Below, piece after piece: positions 2,987-14,123 of a DNA stretch of 64,000 nucleotides (position 1 is its first letter; every line of letters begins with the position of its first letter). The notes under the pieces were generated by a model, which saw only the letters and a list, made by a program, of their open reading frames with translations, was not told the DNA's origin and did not search any database. The stretch spans positions 3,176 to 67,175 of the forward strand of contig JAADVB010000085.1 in assembly GCA_023334545.1 (NCBI GenBank). Direction: 5' to 3'. The position numbers and the translations under genes are program-made. This stretch comes from Salisapilia sapeloensis CBS 127946 (taxonomy: Eukaryota > Protista > Oomycota).

Positions 2987-3462
2987 CGTCCGAAGACATG
3001 TTTGTGTGCTCATTTTTGCAGTTGTAAAGGATCTAGTGACTAAACTAGGTAGTGTATATGGTAGCTTTCGTATAAAGCTTGATTTCCTGTGTGTTCTATC
3101 GGATCAACGCAGTACGGATGTGGTAGTACTCCTGACTAAAGTCTACCTTCTGCCTGGTCCCTCCCGCGCTTTCTTCTTGTTTTGAACCAATACGATCTTC
3201 CCGATCAAGTACGATGTACCATTATCGTACCAACTTAAGAGAGGCATTATAGCCGTTGAGATAATAACGAAGTAGAACATACCATTCTTCATAAGCATGT
3301 ACAAAAGATTATTCTTATGGTGGTATCTTTTTCTTCCTTTTATAAGTTGGCTGGGTACGGATGGAATGGATTCAGGCTAAGAGAATACATAGTTAGAGTG
3401 TAACGGATCTTGAAAGGTACTTGACGACGACACAAGAATCAGGCTTCAGAGTGAGATTCGAC

Positions 3463-8254: not shown

Positions 8255-9334
8255 ATGGCCTCTCCATCATCCAGCCTTTCTCAGTCCATACTTCTCCGAG
8301 AAGATATGGCCGCACGCGAAGAGCTAGAGCGTGAAAACTTTAATCTAAAAATGAAATTAACTTCCGTCGAAGAGCGACTTGCTCGATTCGTCAACGGGCA
8401 GGCGATTGTCGACCAAGAGCAGGTCGATCAGCTCATGCAGAACCTCAGGGATACACAGGAAGCTCTATACGAACAGAAGGAACTCGCTCGAGAAGCCAAG
8501 CGTGCTGCGTATCACGCCCAACGGGAGCTCGATCGAGTCCGAGCGAAGCAAGAGAAGAGCGAAAAGCTTTCCAACAGTTACGAGAATCTAGTTCAGGACA
8601 AGACCGATTTACAGGAAGAATTACAAAAGCTCTTGAAAGTAAATCATGAACTTCAGGCCAGTCGAGACGAATGGAAACGCAAGTATGAGGACCAAGTACT
8701 TGTGGAAAATGATTTAAAGCAAGTGACAGAGGACCGAGATGAATGGAAACGTACTAGTGAAGAGCACTTGCGTAATCTTCGTCTGACAGAAGAAAAGTAT
8801 ACGGCAGACATAGAGGAGTTGCAGACGAAACACCAGACTAAAGTTCAGTCCATACAGTCGAAACTTGACGACGCGACGTCGACATTGACCAGGACGGAGC
8901 GTCGTAATAAAGAGCTAGAGCAAGAGTATAAGGAGCGTCTAGACCAGGTTATATCGTCCTCGAACGACTTGTTTGTGGACTTAAAGCGACACAAGCGAGA
9001 GAAGGAGGAGTATAAAGTGGGTCTCAAGAGCTCGATGCGAGAACGAAAGGACTTGCTGCGTGAGTTGGAAAAGTATAAGAAAGCATATCAGGAACGCCGG
9101 GAGGAAAAGAAGACTCGTGGCAAGTCGATTGAAGGTCTGAAGGACCAGTTGAAGCGTCATTTAGAGGAAACCAAGTACATGCATGAAGAAGTCTACCATC
9201 GGTGGGTCGATGCAGGGTTTCCCAATCGAGACGTGTCGAAAGACTATGTGACACACAATCAGATGAGTGCATTTAGAGACGCTGGTGATAGATGTCAGAA
9301 TCATGTCGAGAAACTCGATCGACTGGCTGCCTGA
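8255..9334 (+). CDS. Coiled-coil protein with N-terminal centrosomin motif 1 (CM1 / gamma-TuNA-like)
   Basis: LREDMAAREELERENFNLKMKLTSVEERL aligns without gaps to the CM1 consensus (L/M)(R/K)E......L..ENFNLKLRIYFLEER; the remainder is heptad coiled coil. Confidence 0.7.
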   Translation: MASPSSSLSQSILLREDMAAREELERENFNLKMKLTSVEERLARFVNGQAIVDQEQVDQLMQNLRDTQEALYEQKELAREAKRAAYHAQRELDRVRAKQEKSEKLSNSYENLVQDKTDLQEELQKLLKVNHELQASRDEWKRKYEDQVLVENDLKQVTEDRDEWKRTSEEHLRNLRLTEEKYTADIEELQTKHQTKVQSIQSKLDDATSTLTRTERRNKELEQEYKERLDQVISSSNDLFVDLKRHKREKEEYKVGLKSSMRERKDLLRELEKYKKAYQERREEKKTRGKSIEGLKDQLKRHLEETKYMHEEVYHRWVDAGFPNRDVSKDYVTHNQMSAFRDAGDRCQNHVEKLDRLAA

Positions 9335-9768
9335 TAGGAGTACTTGGCACTGTATCTAGACCTATTGCGTCCGAGTGGGCATCTAGTAGCTATGTCGAAA
9401 CGTCTGGAGCTGATATAATTTATCAAGATAACCTTTGCATCCTCCGTCTCATAATTACTCATATACACATACAGTTTAGGTACATTTGGAAGTAGCTAGG
9501 AAGACACGCACAGTCGAGATGGTAGCACCTAGCGCCCATTACGAGCAAGTAACTTGCTTTTTGTATGTGCTGGGTATCGATAAAGCACGACTAAAACGTA
9601 TGTTTTAGCATCGAGGAACGACTAAACACGCCAAAACTCCAAACGACGGCCGACAAAAAGCATCCAGTTATCAGATGGCACTAATTTGCGCATTTTAACA
9701 ACAAAATAGGACGCGCCACGTCCATTTAGACGAATTATATCCGTGACATTTGGCACAGCTTAGCGTTA

Positions 9769-11797
9769 ATGGCGCTTACCATGCAACGAAGAGAGGATAA
9801 TACAACCTGTACGAGCCGTGCAATAGGACGAATCCTCTGGATATTTGCTCTGTACGCCTCGGTTTGTCGTGGCGAAGCACGCGACGCATGTCAAGGTGCG
9901 TGTCATTGGCGTCCGTGGTAGATCCCCTTCTCACGACCCGCTCGACCGGTTTATCTCATACCATTGTCAATCGTAGGCAGCTCTAAAGCATACGCAGCAG
10001 ATGATAACAGTCAGCGGATAGCAGCTCGTGATACGAAGAATGATATCTCACCGGCAGACGCTCAAGCCGAACCTACTGTCGGTACGTTGCTAAATCGTAG
10101 ATGGAGTAGCAAGATATCTTACTCTAGTGATACTAGAGAGTCTACTAGCGGACTTTGATCACGATGGTCGCGTTGGCAGAAATGAAATAGAGCAGATTAA
10201 AGAGAATCTGCATCAATTCTTTGACGTGGATGACAGCGGAGATATCGATAGCAAAGAACTCAAATCCGTGCGTACTTGTGAAGATCCATTCAACCATTCC
10301 CAACCGTACTTAATTCCATTCCAGATGAGCAATAACGACAAGGACGTCCGCTCTGCTTTCCAAAAACTAGATCGAGATCATGATTCCGTCATCTCGTTGC
10401 AAGAACTCGATGCTCGATGGGAGCGAGTAGGTGCCGAAATGACAGTCGATGAAGTCGCTGACTGGGTTTCTTTCACCGTCCAGCTGCCCCAATACGCACA
10501 AGCCTTCCAGTCCAACTCCATCAGTGGCTATACCTTTCCATTGCTCATGGATCACGATGGCAGTCGTTTAGCTGAAATAGGCGTCGACAGCCCTCTCCAT
10601 CGACATCAATTAGCTGTCTTTCTAAAGAAAAAGTATCTCGGCATGGGACGAAAGCCACAGGCGCCTATATCCGTTACATGCAGCATGGACGCTTCGAGCT
10701 ATACTGACCGGACGGCGGAGAATACTAGACTGAACCTCGTGCAGCTCGAGTGGGAGCCTGCGGAGGATACACCTCAGCGCTTCCAGCTCCAACGTCGAAT
10801 CGCAGGCAGCAGTGAATGGGAACTTGTCTATGTCGGACCGGATACAGACTTTATGGATGCCATCGGAGGCATGGAAGGCAATGCCCATCACATCATGTAC
10901 AGAGTGACGGCGTGGAACTCATATGGACGCAGTCCTCGCATTAGCGTTCGATGCGACTCGGCACGTAACACGACACCAGAATCTTCCGCTTCTATCTTAC
11001 CTCATGAAGGGCATCGGCACGTAGAAGCGTCGTGGACACCATCCGCAATCGCGACTGTCATCTCGATCTTTAAAATGTATTTGTGGTGGCTAGACGAAGC
11101 CATCGCACTCACTTTGTTCATCATACTACCTATTCGTGGCTTCATCTACGGTGACGCTAACCTCGTCGTCAAGTGGATGCGCAAACTGCCACCGAACATG
11201 CCGACTCGCGTGACGGTGGAAGCTGATTTGAACAAGACTTCCATCAGTGAAGCTGTTGCCGTGGTTTCGTGGGATAAACCGACTGATAACGGTGTTCCGA
11301 TCGTCCAGTACAATGTACGTTGGACACGCCTAAAGACAGAGGAAGAGGAGTGTAAGGAGCTCCAGGCCAAGTCTTTGCCAACGAGTGTCACGGTTTATCA
11401 TTTAAGACACGGGGAGACCTATCGCTTCGTCGTAGAAGCCGTGAACGAGTTCGGGCTTTCCTCGTTCTCGAGTAGGTCGACGTACATGGTACCGATGCCG
11501 GAGTTCACAGGTCGCATCCTGTCGCAACAAAAGTCGTCTATTGAAGACACCATCCTACGTAATCAGTGCTATCTGTGTCTTCGAGCAAAGCGACACAAGG
11601 TCCGGATGCCTTTGATCTCCAAGTTCGATCGCCAAGTGCTTCACTTTTGCTGTGTCTGCGACCGAGAGTTCTGTCACTATCATCGTGGCAAAGTGCATCA
11701 TACGAAAGCGTTGAGCTGTCCAGCTGTGGATGGACGGTGCGTCTGTAAAGACTGTCAAGAAAATAATCGTCTGCCTAGAGCTGCGTCTGGGCAATAG
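9769..11797 (+). CDS. Predicted single-pass membrane protein: signal peptide - EF-hands - SAM (STIM-like) - FN3 - TM - FN3 - Cys/His zinc finger; 4 exons
   Basis: Exons 9769-9895, 9977-10081, 10137-10267, 10325-11797 (GT-AG introns of 81, 55 and 57 nt, phases consistent). EF loops DFDHDGRVGRNE, DVDDSGDIDSKE, DRDHDSVISLQE; SAM TVDEVADWVSFTVQLPQY...; FN3 signatures LEWEP...YRVTAWNSYGRS and VSWDKP..NG.PI..YNV...LRHGETYRFVVEAVNEFG. Confidence 0.8.
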
Positions 11798-11873
11798 GGA
11801 GAACATATAGACAAGTAAATGATCAATACATTGGTAATTGCATACGCTCTTTCGTTTATACCTAACGTCCTAC

Positions 11874-14123
11874 TCAGTGCAGTGCCAACGTATCCCACTC
11901 CATCATGTCGTCGGGAGATAGATCCGAGTCTTCGTGCATCGACAGTTCTGGCAGTTGAAGCTGCAGGTCACTCGATCGACTGGCACATAGCTGAGCTTCG
12001 TTCACACAGATGAAACCAATTTTCCGTTGTACATCTCCTCGCACTTTATTTCGTCTTGTGGATGACGGAACGGATATAGGGTGTAGCATCTTATCTGGTG
12101 TGATGCTTGTAGGAGTAAGGGAGAATAGTGTGAGCGCAAGAGCCTTCAGACGAGGCCAATCTTGGCCGATCGTATGCCAAAATTCGAGTGGAAACATATC
12201 ACGTTTGTCCATTTCACGACCTTCGCCTTCGTTCCGATCATCTTGTGTGGCAAAGACGACGTACTCTTCGTATTCCTCTCCAATCGCATTCTTCTGCTCT
12301 TCCTCTACATCAACAGTACTTTCGGAAGGAGCGTGCTCGGAGATGTACTCTTCCATAAGCTCTCGTTCGTTTTTGGCAGTATCAACGTAGCGAGGATCGA
12401 GTACAAACGCTAGACGATGAGCATCTCCTACGACTGTCATCAGCCTGTCGATAACAATATCCTTTAACTTCTGTATCTCTGTGTCGGACAAGGAGAAGAG
12501 GTCATCAAAGGCGATCGACAAATGCTTTAGCTCGAAGTAGATGTCCGACAAGGTCGTTTGGTCCTCCATGAACTTTCGTTGTAACTTCTCAAAGACACTT
12601 GCGACTTCAATTCCTTTATCCAGTGTCATGCTGGAATTGAGTGAAAGCATAAAGTCCTTTGCCCACTGCCGTACCTTTTGATCAGTACGCCCCATCGCTG
12701 TCACAAAAGTTTTCTTGCTCACGACAGACGAAAAGTGCTGCCTGTTTTTGGCTAAAAACTCGAGTCGACGACCTAAATCGACATACTTTTTCGTCCGACA
12801 TGTTGCTGTCATCATGATTTGCACTGCTTTCCGGTCAAAGTGCTTGGACAGTGGTAGCGTGGTGAATAACGAAAGGAACTTGTCTGCATCAGACACAAAC
12901 TCTACCAAGTCACATAAGGCATCATCATCATGTCGATTCATATCTGTACGCAAGAGGTCATGCATGGCAAGCTGTAGTGCATGGGAACTGCAGCCGTAAA
13001 AGAATTTCGTTGGAAAATCTGTCTTTAGTAGCTCCCACGCATCCACGTACGCCTCATTCGCAGCCGTGACGACGCCACTCACGTTGTAGTTAACGCGAGT
13101 CATCATGGCACGAATGTCCGTTGCAATAGTGTGTGCATCATGACATGTATGGGCACTCGGCTGTACTGCATCCAGAAGGAAGTACTTGTCGCTGCAAAGA
13201 GCAGTGTACATGACGCAAGGACTACCTTCTCCATCTTTACTTTCGGTGCCCATTCTACAATGGCTCCAATCGTCTCGTTTGAGACAGATAGCGGACTGTG
13301 TCATCAAATAGCTACAGACCTGCATCTGCACTTTGTCATAACATCGCTGCAACAGTTCATTTTCTAATCGTTTTCGATCAGGCACTCGGGAGCTAGGAAG
13401 TAGCACAGATAACGCACGCTGTAGATAGGGCTTGCTATACATATCTAAAGAAGCTCCACTTGTATAGATATGCATCGCCAAATCTTCCTCTGCTCTGTCA
13501 TAAGAAACGCTTTGGAGAAATGTCGTCGTTCGAGCACTCGTCGACTCTGTACGTCTACGTTTAGATGCTGGTTCGTCCTTGATACCATTGTGAAATGTTG
13601 TAATTGGATCCATCAAGTGGTCCGATAGACCGTGATGAAGCGATAAGTGACCGATAGCACCGGACGGGTGAGGCGCGTCCAAGGTAAACGACGTGGAAAC
13701 GTCTGGCGAAGGGATACTCGGTGGAGATGACGCAGTTGATAATCCTGCATTCGATCGCTCCTGAACTTTTCCGGTCTTGTTGCTGCTTTCCTGTGCAATC
13801 TTCATGTGGTAGAACGGAAGACTGTCCTTGTATTCGGCCATAAAGGCAGGCTGACGTTGAGCGACTTGGAACGGAGTGCAGCGTTTCAAGTGACGTATAG
13901 CCTGTTCGGATTTTTTATAGTAATACACTATCTGATGACAATGCTTGCAAGTGGCCGAGTTACTTTTGTTCGGGTCTGGATCATCCGTTAGTAGTCGCCA
14001 GATCGGACTTCGACTTCTTCCAGCTTTCTTCTTCTTCTTTGTCGATTCTGTCATGAAACTAAACTCTTGACCGGGCGGATAGTCGTGCATCAAACTCCGC
14101 TTGGTCGTGTCGCTTGAAGACAT
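11874..14123 (-). CDS. hAT transposase-derived protein (BED finger + DUF659-type core + hAT dimerisation region), probably domesticated
   Basis: BED finger SPIWRLL...ATCKHC...AIRHLKRC; core DDWS, CSSHALQL; C-terminal PLEFW...WPRLKALALTLFSL. Intact 749-aa single-exon ORF; no TIR or TSD seen. Confidence 0.8.
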   Translation of the reverse strand: MSSSDTTKRSLMHDYPPGQEFSFMTESTKKKKKAGRSRSPIWRLLTDDPDPNKSNSATCKHCHQIVYYYKKSEQAIRHLKRCTPFQVAQRQPAFMAEYKDSLPFYHMKIAQESSNKTGKVQERSNAGLSTASSPPSIPSPDVSTSFTLDAPHPSGAIGHLSLHHGLSDHLMDPITTFHNGIKDEPASKRRRTESTSARTTTFLQSVSYDRAEEDLAMHIYTSGASLDMYSKPYLQRALSVLLPSSRVPDRKRLENELLQRCYDKVQMQVCSYLMTQSAICLKRDDWSHCRMGTESKDGEGSPCVMYTALCSDKYFLLDAVQPSAHTCHDAHTIATDIRAMMTRVNYNVSGVVTAANEAYVDAWELLKTDFPTKFFYGCSSHALQLAMHDLLRTDMNRHDDDALCDLVEFVSDADKFLSLFTTLPLSKHFDRKAVQIMMTATCRTKKYVDLGRRLEFLAKNRQHFSSVVSKKTFVTAMGRTDQKVRQWAKDFMLSLNSSMTLDKGIEVASVFEKLQRKFMEDQTTLSDIYFELKHLSIAFDDLFSLSDTEIQKLKDIVIDRLMTVVGDAHRLAFVLDPRYVDTAKNERELMEEYISEHAPSESTVDVEEEQKNAIGEEYEEYVVFATQDDRNEGEGREMDKRDMFPLEFWHTIGQDWPRLKALALTLFSLTPTSITPDKMLHPISVPSSTRRNKVRGDVQRKIGFICVNEAQLCASRSSDLQLQLPELSMHEDSDLSPDDMMEWDTLALH

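Follow-up and report, generated by a model that had tools for sequence, protein, structure and literature searches.

A STIM-type EF-SAM module in a predicted type I membrane protein of the oomycete Salisapilia sapeloensis

A gene on the plus strand of contig JAADVB010000085.1 of Salisapilia sapeloensis CBS 127946 encodes a protein of 611 residues that carries a bona fide STIM-type EF-SAM module, although the protein is not a member of the STIM family in the full sense. The gene lies at positions 9769–11797 of the 64,000-nucleotide stretch that was analysed (contig positions 3,176 to 67,175; hereafter the window, from whose first letter all positions are counted). On balance, and with modest confidence, we favour the view that this is a type I single-pass protein of a widespread and uncharacterised family, equipped with the Ca2+-sensing EF-SAM module of STIM and not with the output of STIM.

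Gene model and protein layout

The coding sequence begins with the ATG at 9769 and closes with a stop codon that ends at 11797; its four exons (9769–9895, 9977–10081, 10137–10267 and 10325–11797) add up to 1,836 nt. An earlier reading of the letters without database searches (the sequence-only reading) had proposed three introns, and these were borne out by RNA: contigs assembled from four runs of a single study skip all three GT..AG introns without mismatches, with identical joints in every run and a word depth of ~29–43. The gene is expressed and spliced as modelled. Transcript contigs begin at 9680–9744, an in-frame TAG lies at 9727–9729 and no ATG precedes 9769 in the contigs; exon 1, which encodes the hydrophobic N-terminus, is therefore used in the mRNA. 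The sequence-only reading had allowed for an unused exon 1 and a cytosolic EF-SAM, and that case falls away, as the exon present in the RNA contigs would put the module on the luminal or outer side. The first part of the gene is arranged as follows.

9769–9895, + strand: exon 1, with the start codon and the N-terminal signal peptide or signal anchor (residues 1–~35); RNA contigs join 9895 to 9977
9896–9976, + strand: intron 1, 81 nt, GT..AG; joint present in all four RNA runs
9977–10081, + strand: exon 2, a variable acidic linker from the signal peptide to the first EF loop, poorly conserved among orthologues
10082–10136, + strand: intron 2, 55 nt, GT..AG; joint present in all four RNA runs
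10268–10324, + strand: intron 3, 57 nt, GT..AG, in frame and stop-free; removed in all four RNA runs

Reading across the spliced intron 2 gives ..PTVESLLADFD.., in agreement with the orthologue consensus, and an alternative acceptor at 10127 was ruled out by the RNA joint, which ends the intron at 10136. Because intron 3 is in frame and stop-free, ab initio gene models can read through it, as does the genomic open reading frame (ORF) 10127–11797; the 19 residues that it encodes are absent from the orthologues in the alignment. An insertion at the same position in a Logan-derived orthologue (P0001) is probably the same read-through artefact.

In the encoded protein, an N-terminal hydrophobic signal is followed by three EF loops, a SAM domain, an FN3 domain, a stalk, a transmembrane (TM) segment, a second FN3 domain and a FYVE-derived Cys/His finger. 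All features and peptides listed by the sequence-only reading, including the extra upstream EF loop, are present in this RNA-supported protein, and the order FN3, TM, FN3, finger had been called correctly. The parts of the protein are given below with residue numbers and, where assigned, window positions.

Residues 1–~35: N-terminus, a basic n-region and then an 11-residue hydrophobic core, ILWIFALYASV (residues 22–32)
Residues ~36–76: acidic variable linker
Residues 83–94, 10151–10186, + strand: EF loop 1, DFDHDGRVGRNE, an extra canonical loop, oomycete-specific
Residues 107–118, 10223–10258, + strand: EF loop 2, DVDDSGDIDSKE, equivalent of the canonical EF-hand of STIM
Residues 137–148, 10370–10405, + strand: EF loop 3, DRDHDSVISLQE, equivalent of the hidden EF-hand of STIM, here with canonical ligands
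Residues 152–229, 10415–10648, + strand: SAM domain, Pfam SAM_2 E 5.2e-7, predicted local distance difference test score (pLDDT) >90
Residues 235–332, 10664–10957, + strand: FN3-1, luminal or extracellular in the predicted topology, with two invariant flanking cysteines (VTC...VRC)
Residues 333–361, 10958–11044, + strand: Ser/Thr-rich stalk, conserved among orthologues in neither length nor sequence
Residues 372–391, 11075–11134, + strand: single TM segment, MYLWWLDEAIALTLFIILPI, unusually well conserved
Residues 392–412, 11135–11197, + strand: basic juxtamembrane segment, RGFIYGDAN...MRKLPPN, cytosolic in the predicted topology
Residues 413–514, 11198–11503, + strand: FN3-2, Pfam fn3 E 1.8e-10 (41 bits against a cutoff of 25), cytosolic in the predicted topology
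Residues 536–598, 11567–11755, + strand: finger, C-x2-C-x21-H-x-C-x2-C-x4-C-x2-H-x5-H-x5-C-x6-C-x-C-x2-C

An N-terminal hydrophobic core and a single internal hydrophobic segment were found in the window protein and in all 18 orthologues checked. In an initial spliced model, the TM segment is the sole internal hydrophobic 19-mer whose Kyte-Doolittle mean exceeds 1.2. A type I topology is suggested by the short N-terminal h-region, the positive charges after the TM segment, the paired cysteines of FN3-1 and the zinc-type finger at the C-terminus; in this arrangement the EF-SAM and FN3-1 would face a lumen or the exterior, and FN3-2 and the finger would be cytosolic. The net positive charge of the juxtamembrane segment fits the cytosolic side. 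In the orthologue alignment the invariant FN3-1 cysteines correspond to C185 and C276 of the ORF 10127–11797. FN3-1 itself was identified transitively, as its profile matches the segment after the EF-SAM in ~60 representative proteins, some of which match Pfam fn3. FN3-2 finds titin and NCAM FN3 domains by phmmer in the PDB, and its profile yielded one full match among the representatives (an Albugo protein) and two short fragments (P0092 and P0128). Between the end of the SAM (residue 229) and the start of the TM segment (residue 372) lie ~140 residues, made up of FN3-1 and the variable stalk, and the 220 residues predicted to be cytosolic are assigned to the juxtamembrane segment, FN3-2 and the finger.

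Within the TM segment W, D and P are invariant among orthologues, and the juxtamembrane positions R337, I340, Y341, G342, L354, P355 and P356 (ORF numbering) are invariant in the orthologue alignment. A motif W...LP(I/F/L)(R/S)...DN spanning both segments (window 11075–11197) is common to the oomycetes (ILPIRGFIYGDAN) and to three relatives with two EF-SAM-FN3 units (e.g. WLPIRVLVFLADNHY), in which it lies at ~645–680 (P0057), ~588–625 (P0065) and ~552–590 (P0072). Such conservation is unusual for a simple membrane anchor.

Homology of the EF-SAM module to STIM

By sequence and by predicted fold, the EF-SAM of the window protein is homologous to that of STIM, as the sequence-only reading had proposed. 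Searched as a single sequence with phmmer against all PDB chains, it finds the EF-SAM of STIM2 (1.2e-6) and STIM1 (4.7e-6) as the best matches after FN3 proteins. A profile of 17 oomycete EF-SAM segments reaches STIM1 at 9.1e-14, STIM2 at 1.1e-11 and Caenorhabditis elegans STIM at 1.4e-9, each in one stretch that begins at the canonical EF loop, takes in the second loop and runs on to where the SAM ends, whereas calmodulins match the profile over the EF part only. A family-wide profile matches the STIM chains at 1e-16 to 4.5e-14 over 146–152 of its 170 positions, and no PDB chains other than those of STIM are matched continuously over the two EF loops together with the SAM.

The SAM domain carries a STIM-like signature (TVDEVxxWxxxxVxLPQY...FR....SG...P.L) and an anchor helix, HRHQLAVFL. 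Its relationship was judged by ranking against all PDB SAM domains. With a SAM-only profile STIM1 came first (7.3e-8, 35.7 bits), followed by liprin-beta-1 (29.9 bits) and STIM2 (29.5 bits) and then by caskins, neurabin and Shank. The SAM is thus nearest to that of STIM by a modest margin, where the sequence-only reading had seen a possible refutation in grouping with generic SAM domains.

The predicted structure points the same way. An AlphaFold2 (AF2) model of the EF-SAM built on 74 family sequences reached a mean pLDDT of 87.8 and a predicted TM-score of 0.80, with low values only over the read-through intron residues; an earlier run with 17 oomycete sequences gave a pLDDT of 60 in the EF region and was not used for the fold search. 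A Foldseek search of the PDB with the later model returned only three matches at E <= 1e-3, all of them STIM EF-SAM structures (6pw7, 2l5y and 2k60), with TM-scores of 0.58–0.68 over 160–171 columns. Among the AlphaFold Database clusters, the whole module was matched by the oomycete cluster, three 'EF-hand domain-containing' proteins and proteins named STIM, SAM-domain or unnamed. In the predicted fold the EF pair is packed onto the SAM, as in the matched Ca2+-loaded STIM structures. In the last SAM helix the hydrophobic positions have been retained (HRHQLAVFL, against HRQKLQL in the STIM1 segment aligned with it); they are the counterparts of the STIM1 residues that insert into the cleft of the EF-hands.

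Both paired EF loops and the third, oomycete-specific loop keep canonical Ca2+ ligands. EF loop 2 aligns with the STIM1 loop DDDANGDVDVEE, and its ligand positions are conserved across the family. In EF loop 3 the ligands D1, D/N3, D5 and E/D12 occur in 14 of 14 oomycete sequences and in nearly all of 60 other family sequences, and the loop is probably canonical and Ca2+-binding. The sequence-only reading had described it as a second, 'hidden' EF; its position is indeed equivalent to that of the hidden EF in STIM, but the loop has canonical ligands and is not hidden. EF loop 1 has D/D/D/G/E at positions 1, 3, 5, 6 and 12 in 12–13 of 14 oomycete sequences, is deleted in Albugo and is unalignable in the relatives outside the oomycetes. 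It lies a mere 24 residues ahead of EF loop 2, too near to form a classical EF pair with it.

STIM proteins are ER-luminal Ca2+ sensors of store-operated Ca2+ entry, and their cytosolic CC1 and CAD/SOAR bind and open Orai. The module is alike to those of STIM1, STIM2 and C. elegans STIM in sequence and predicted fold, with the same order, the same spacing and the same anchor helix, and in both proteins it is placed after a signal peptide and before a TM segment. The differences lie around it. Where STIM has a hidden second EF loop, that of the window protein is canonical, and oomycetes add a third loop; FN3-1 and the stalk are inserted between the SAM and the TM segment. CC1–CC3 with CAD (SOAR), the Pro/Ser region and the polybasic tail of STIM are missing, and a cytosolic FN3 and a FYVE-derived finger stand in their place. 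A Pfam scan of the window protein at E <= 10 found no SOAR/CAD and no other coiled-coil family, in line with the earlier statement that an Orai-activating coil is lacking, and no polybasic tail is present in the protein. Since a CAD/SOAR region, direct adjacency of SAM and TM segment and a hidden EF were all looked for in it and are absent, the protein is not a STIM in full.

The finger and the wider family

The sequence-only reading had called the C-terminal finger FYVE/PHD-like, and comparison with relatives places it on the FYVE side. All 12 Cys/His positions of the oomycete finger are invariant, as is the cross-brace spacing C-x2-C ... C-x2-C-x4-C-x2-H ... C-x2-C, which supplies the eight metal-ligand positions of the FYVE type with His as the sixth. 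Aligned by hhalign, the oomycete finger matches the fingers of relatives outside the oomycetes with 98 % probability (E 2.8e-13). The fingers of these relatives match known FYVE domains (EEA1, Vps27, WDFY3 and Hrs) at ~1e-6, and 15 of the 23 match Pfam FYVE (PF01363) at E <= 0.01; only that of P0100 exceeds the gathering score (29.1 bits against 27.8). An eL24/RLP24 zinc-ribbon identity was also considered for the oomycete finger, whose profile gave insignificant PDB matches of that kind (E 0.08–0.25), and the FYVE link via the relatives was preferred.

The PI3P (phosphatidylinositol 3-phosphate)-binding FYVE domains of EEA1, Vps27 and Hrs share with the window finger the cross-braced Cys spacing and a Phe before the fifth ligand. 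In contrast to them, the window finger has none of the PI3P-binding motifs WxxD, R(R/K)HHCR and RVC, its sixth ligand is His, and it holds four further invariant His/Cys positions, possible ligands of a third metal site. In place of the basic R(R/K)HHCR stands a degenerate LHFCCVC (...DRQVLHFCCVC..., CVCKDC), while many fingers of relatives keep R(R/K)HHC. Together, the lost motifs, the His ligand and the additional His/Cys make PI3P binding by the window finger doubtful. The finger is FYVE-derived, as linked transitively through its relatives, and has probably lost PI3P binding.

Protrudin (ZFYVE27) is an ER (endoplasmic reticulum) membrane protein with a C-terminal FYVE domain that bridges to endosomes. 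As a functional analogy only, the likeness is that of a membrane-anchored protein whose cytosolic tail ends in a FYVE-type domain, which would suit contact-site tethering; protrudin differs in that it is not known to have a luminal Ca2+ sensor and is held by a hairpin in place of a type I anchor.

The window protein belongs to an EF-SAM-FN3-TM-FYVE-like family. In the oomycetes, 52 orthologues with 32–57 % identity were found in Saprolegnia, Aphanomyces, Albugo, Pythium, Phytophthora and the downy mildews. An exhaustive profile search of 1.84 billion representative proteins gave 338 matches at E <= 1e-10, and the best 150 of these include ~70 proteins with a near-complete EF-SAM. Among 144 representatives scanned, an FN3 homologous to FN3-1 directly follows the EF-SAM in ~60; the finger stands C-terminal to the EF-SAM in 25, and in 22 of these a hydrophobic segment lies between the two. 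The recurring plan consists of an N-terminal hydrophobic signal, single or tandem EF-SAM-FN3 units, one TM segment, a long low-complexity cytosolic tail and the finger.

Members of the family include diatoms (Corethron, Stephanopyxis and Ditylum) and other ochrophytes, namely the phaeothamniophyte Phaeothamnion and the xanthophyte Tribonema. The haptophyte lineage is represented by a pavlovophyte (the partial Pavlovales protein KAJ1623338.1, which shows only FN3 and EF-SAM repeats, with two EF-SAMs and three FN3s), and the green lineage by the streptophyte alga Chlorokybus and the chlorophytes Apatococcus (KAK9858438.1) and Gonium pectorale (KXZ44899.1). Queries with the Chlorokybus protein for members in land plants and other streptophytes returned only the query itself and one FN3 protein, and a feature search of the ESM Atlas returned only the oomycete cluster and generic FN3 proteins. 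The sequence-only reading had suggested an oomycete system; the protein is indeed present and conserved in oomycetes, but the architecture extends to diatoms, other ochrophytes, a haptophyte and green algae.

The algal proteins share with the window protein the EF-SAM-FN3 supermodule, one TM segment and the C-terminal finger. They differ in having a long disordered cytosolic linker in place of FN3-2, many of them keep R(R/K)HHC, and some have two tandem EF-SAM-FN3 units. FN3-2 and EF loop 1 appear to be oomycete additions. Tandem units before the TM segment occur in many relatives outside the oomycetes (P0054, P0057–P0061, P0064, P0065, P0068, P0072 and P0079), the closest of which score 140–210 bits and come mostly from metagenome contigs.

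Some oomycetes hold two copies of the gene, as in Aphanomyces stellatus (P0045 and P0051) and Lagenidium giganteum (P0033 and P0038). The A. stellatus copies are numbered consecutively (Aste57867_18895 and 18896), apparently on one contig of 58,399 bp. The second copies are more divergent, and EF loop 1 is lost or weakened in them. Two longer models, P0027 from P. fragariae (809 residues) and P0036 from Peronospora belbahrii (854 residues), carry the additional Pfam families PF16810 and PF02535 and are probably annotation fusions with neighbouring genes.

A candidate calcium sensor and its alternatives

Papers on Ca2+ signalling restrict STIM to animals and choanoflagellates or discount a hit in oomycetes. 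One review dates the origin of STIM to the metazoan accretion, close to where animals arose (Schäffer et al., 2020; PMC7016017). In oomycetes, a STIM1 hit in P. infestans was reported to have 'just shared a SAM motif', and homologues of STIM or Orai could not be detected in any of nine oomycete genomes (Zheng & Mackrill, 2016; PMC4820453), a statement repeated in 2022. Automatic database names of the orthologues do refer to STIM ('Cell surface glycoprotein STIM, contains SAM domain'; 'Stromal interaction molecule-like protein'), and one transcriptome paper carries such a label in passing. Full-text literature searches found no paper describing the EF-SAM-FN3-FYVE family. What lies behind the signal peptide of this conserved and expressed oomycete membrane protein is a complete EF-SAM switch and not a SAM alone. 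The same module and architecture in diatoms, other ochrophytes, a haptophyte and green algae provide a testable candidate for the sensing of store or external Ca2+ in these groups, and the origin of the EF-SAM module moves well outside Holozoa, unless an ancient transfer took place. To oomycete biology it offers a conserved membrane protein that is open to study in pathogens of plants and fish with Ca2+-dependent life-cycle transitions.

The protein is most likely a luminal or extracellular Ca2+ sensor that would signal by Ca2+-dependent clustering, and its sensing end, by analogy, probably works like that of STIM. With Ca2+ bound, the EF-SAM would be compact and monomeric. A drop of Ca2+ in the compartment that it faces, be it the lumen of the ER or of another store, or the outside, would loosen the EF-SAM, expose hydrophobic surfaces and lead to self-association, as it does in STIM. 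Since the SAM is set off from the membrane by an FN3 and a flexible stalk, the signal probably crosses by lateral clustering and not by a conformational change of the TM helix. Clustering would then raise the avidity of the cytosolic FN3 and finger for a partner. In relatives that have R(R/K)HHC and a long disordered tail, this partner may be a phosphoinositide membrane, and the proteins may act as Ca2+-regulated tethers; in oomycetes, which have lost R(R/K)HHC, a protein is the likelier partner. An additional partner within the membrane is suggested by the high conservation of the TM and juxtamembrane segment, with its invariant W, D, P, R, I, Y and G and the shared LPIR...DN motif.

Several points weigh against this interpretation. 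Hydrophobicity and rules of thumb were the basis for assigning the signal peptide and the topology; an FN3 on the cytosolic side is unusual, and the hydrophobic segment contains D, E, P and R. If that segment were not a TM segment, the protein in its entirety would be luminal or secreted, with a disulfide knot at the finger in place of a zinc site. The oomycete finger alone reaches no zinc-finger family in the Pfam scan, FYVE included; its N-terminal half aligns poorly with FYVE, and the hhalign match covers the second half only. Further, AF2 was trained on STIM structures, so that the predicted packing of the EF pair on the SAM is not fully independent evidence, and the SAM-only profile separates STIM1 from liprin-beta by only ~6 bits.

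The strongest alternative, though we consider it unlikely, is a receptor or adhesion protein of the plasma membrane, with the EF-SAM and FN3-1 outside the cell, which would report or require external Ca2+, for example in zoospore encystment, adhesion or hyphal tip growth, and would monitor no store. A Ser/Thr stalk next to a cysteine-flanked FN3 is a typical ectodomain arrangement, the C-terminus shows no KKXX or KDEL-type signal, and the automatic names 'cell surface glycoprotein STIM' agree with such a role. In addition, many oomycete stages are under the control of external Ca2+ (PMC4820453). Location, however, is not fixed by sequence alone; the nearest characterised module, the EF-SAM of STIM, acts mainly in the ER lumen, and the FYVE-type tails of the relatives point to endomembrane targets.

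Improbable, in our view, is that the protein directly regulates Orai-family or other Ca2+-entry channels of oomycetes, gating them via the TM/juxtamembrane segment or via FN3-2 and the finger and not via a CAD/SOAR coil. The sequence-only reading had expected a non-Orai output, which it drew from the missing CAD, and Orai-family genes have been reported in oomycetes, with oomycete sequences placed in the Orai tree (Murphy et al., 2024; PMC11085791). The same study describes diatoms, green algae and early plants as having Orai and no STIM1 homologue, and concludes that another sensor must exist. The family described here occurs in green algae, diatoms, other ochrophytes and a haptophyte, and Orai is reported in green algae, diatoms, brown algae and the haptophyte Emiliania; among land plants, mosses have Orai and angiosperms do not. 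The unusual conservation of the TM segment also fits a channel partner. The window protein, on the other hand, has neither CAD/SOAR, nor a coiled coil, nor a polybasic tail. That the family as a whole is the long-sought luminal Ca2+ sensor of non-animal lineages with Orai but 'no STIM', coupling without CAD/SOAR, is likewise improbable. If it were, store or external Ca2+ would be coupled to Ca2+ entry or to membrane contact sites in oomycetes, diatoms, brown and green algae and haptophytes, and the EF-SAM switch would predate animals and not be an invention of the animal stem.

Very unlikely is a constitutive scaffold, in which permanently Ca2+-loaded EF hands and a SAM/FN3 ectodomain serve stable assembly and anchor an FN3-finger adaptor without any sensing. 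All three EF loops are canonical, which may mean an affinity above that of STIM and saturation at store or external Ca2+ levels, but the docking surface and the anchor residues behind the EF-SAM switch of STIM are conserved, and the pairing of EF and SAM has been kept across very distant lineages. A convergent resemblance, with an EF-hand pair and a SAM joined independently, is barely credible: both domains are very common, calmodulin-type proteins outscore STIM through repeated EF matches when the broad family profile is used, and the SAM-only margin over liprin and caskin is modest, but among PDB chains only those of STIM were matched across both EF loops and the SAM and as whole-module folds, with the same spacing, anchor helix and placement after a signal peptide and before a TM segment.

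Two neighbouring ORFs flank the gene. Upstream, a coiled-coil ORF of 359 residues (window 8255–9334, + strand) has a sub-threshold match to Cnn_1N, the N-terminal motif 1 of centrosomin, with 25.3 bits where the cutoff is 28.5. Downstream, a convergent and transcribed ORF of 749 residues (window 11877–14123, − strand, with 11797–11877 between it and the gene) encodes a hAT-transposase-like protein that contains a BED zinc finger and DUF659. RNA contigs of the STIM-like gene extend to 11837–11842 and those of this neighbour start at 11839–11843; thus the 3′ ends of the two genes abut within a few bases, and the 3′ untranslated region of the STIM-like gene measures only ~40 nt.

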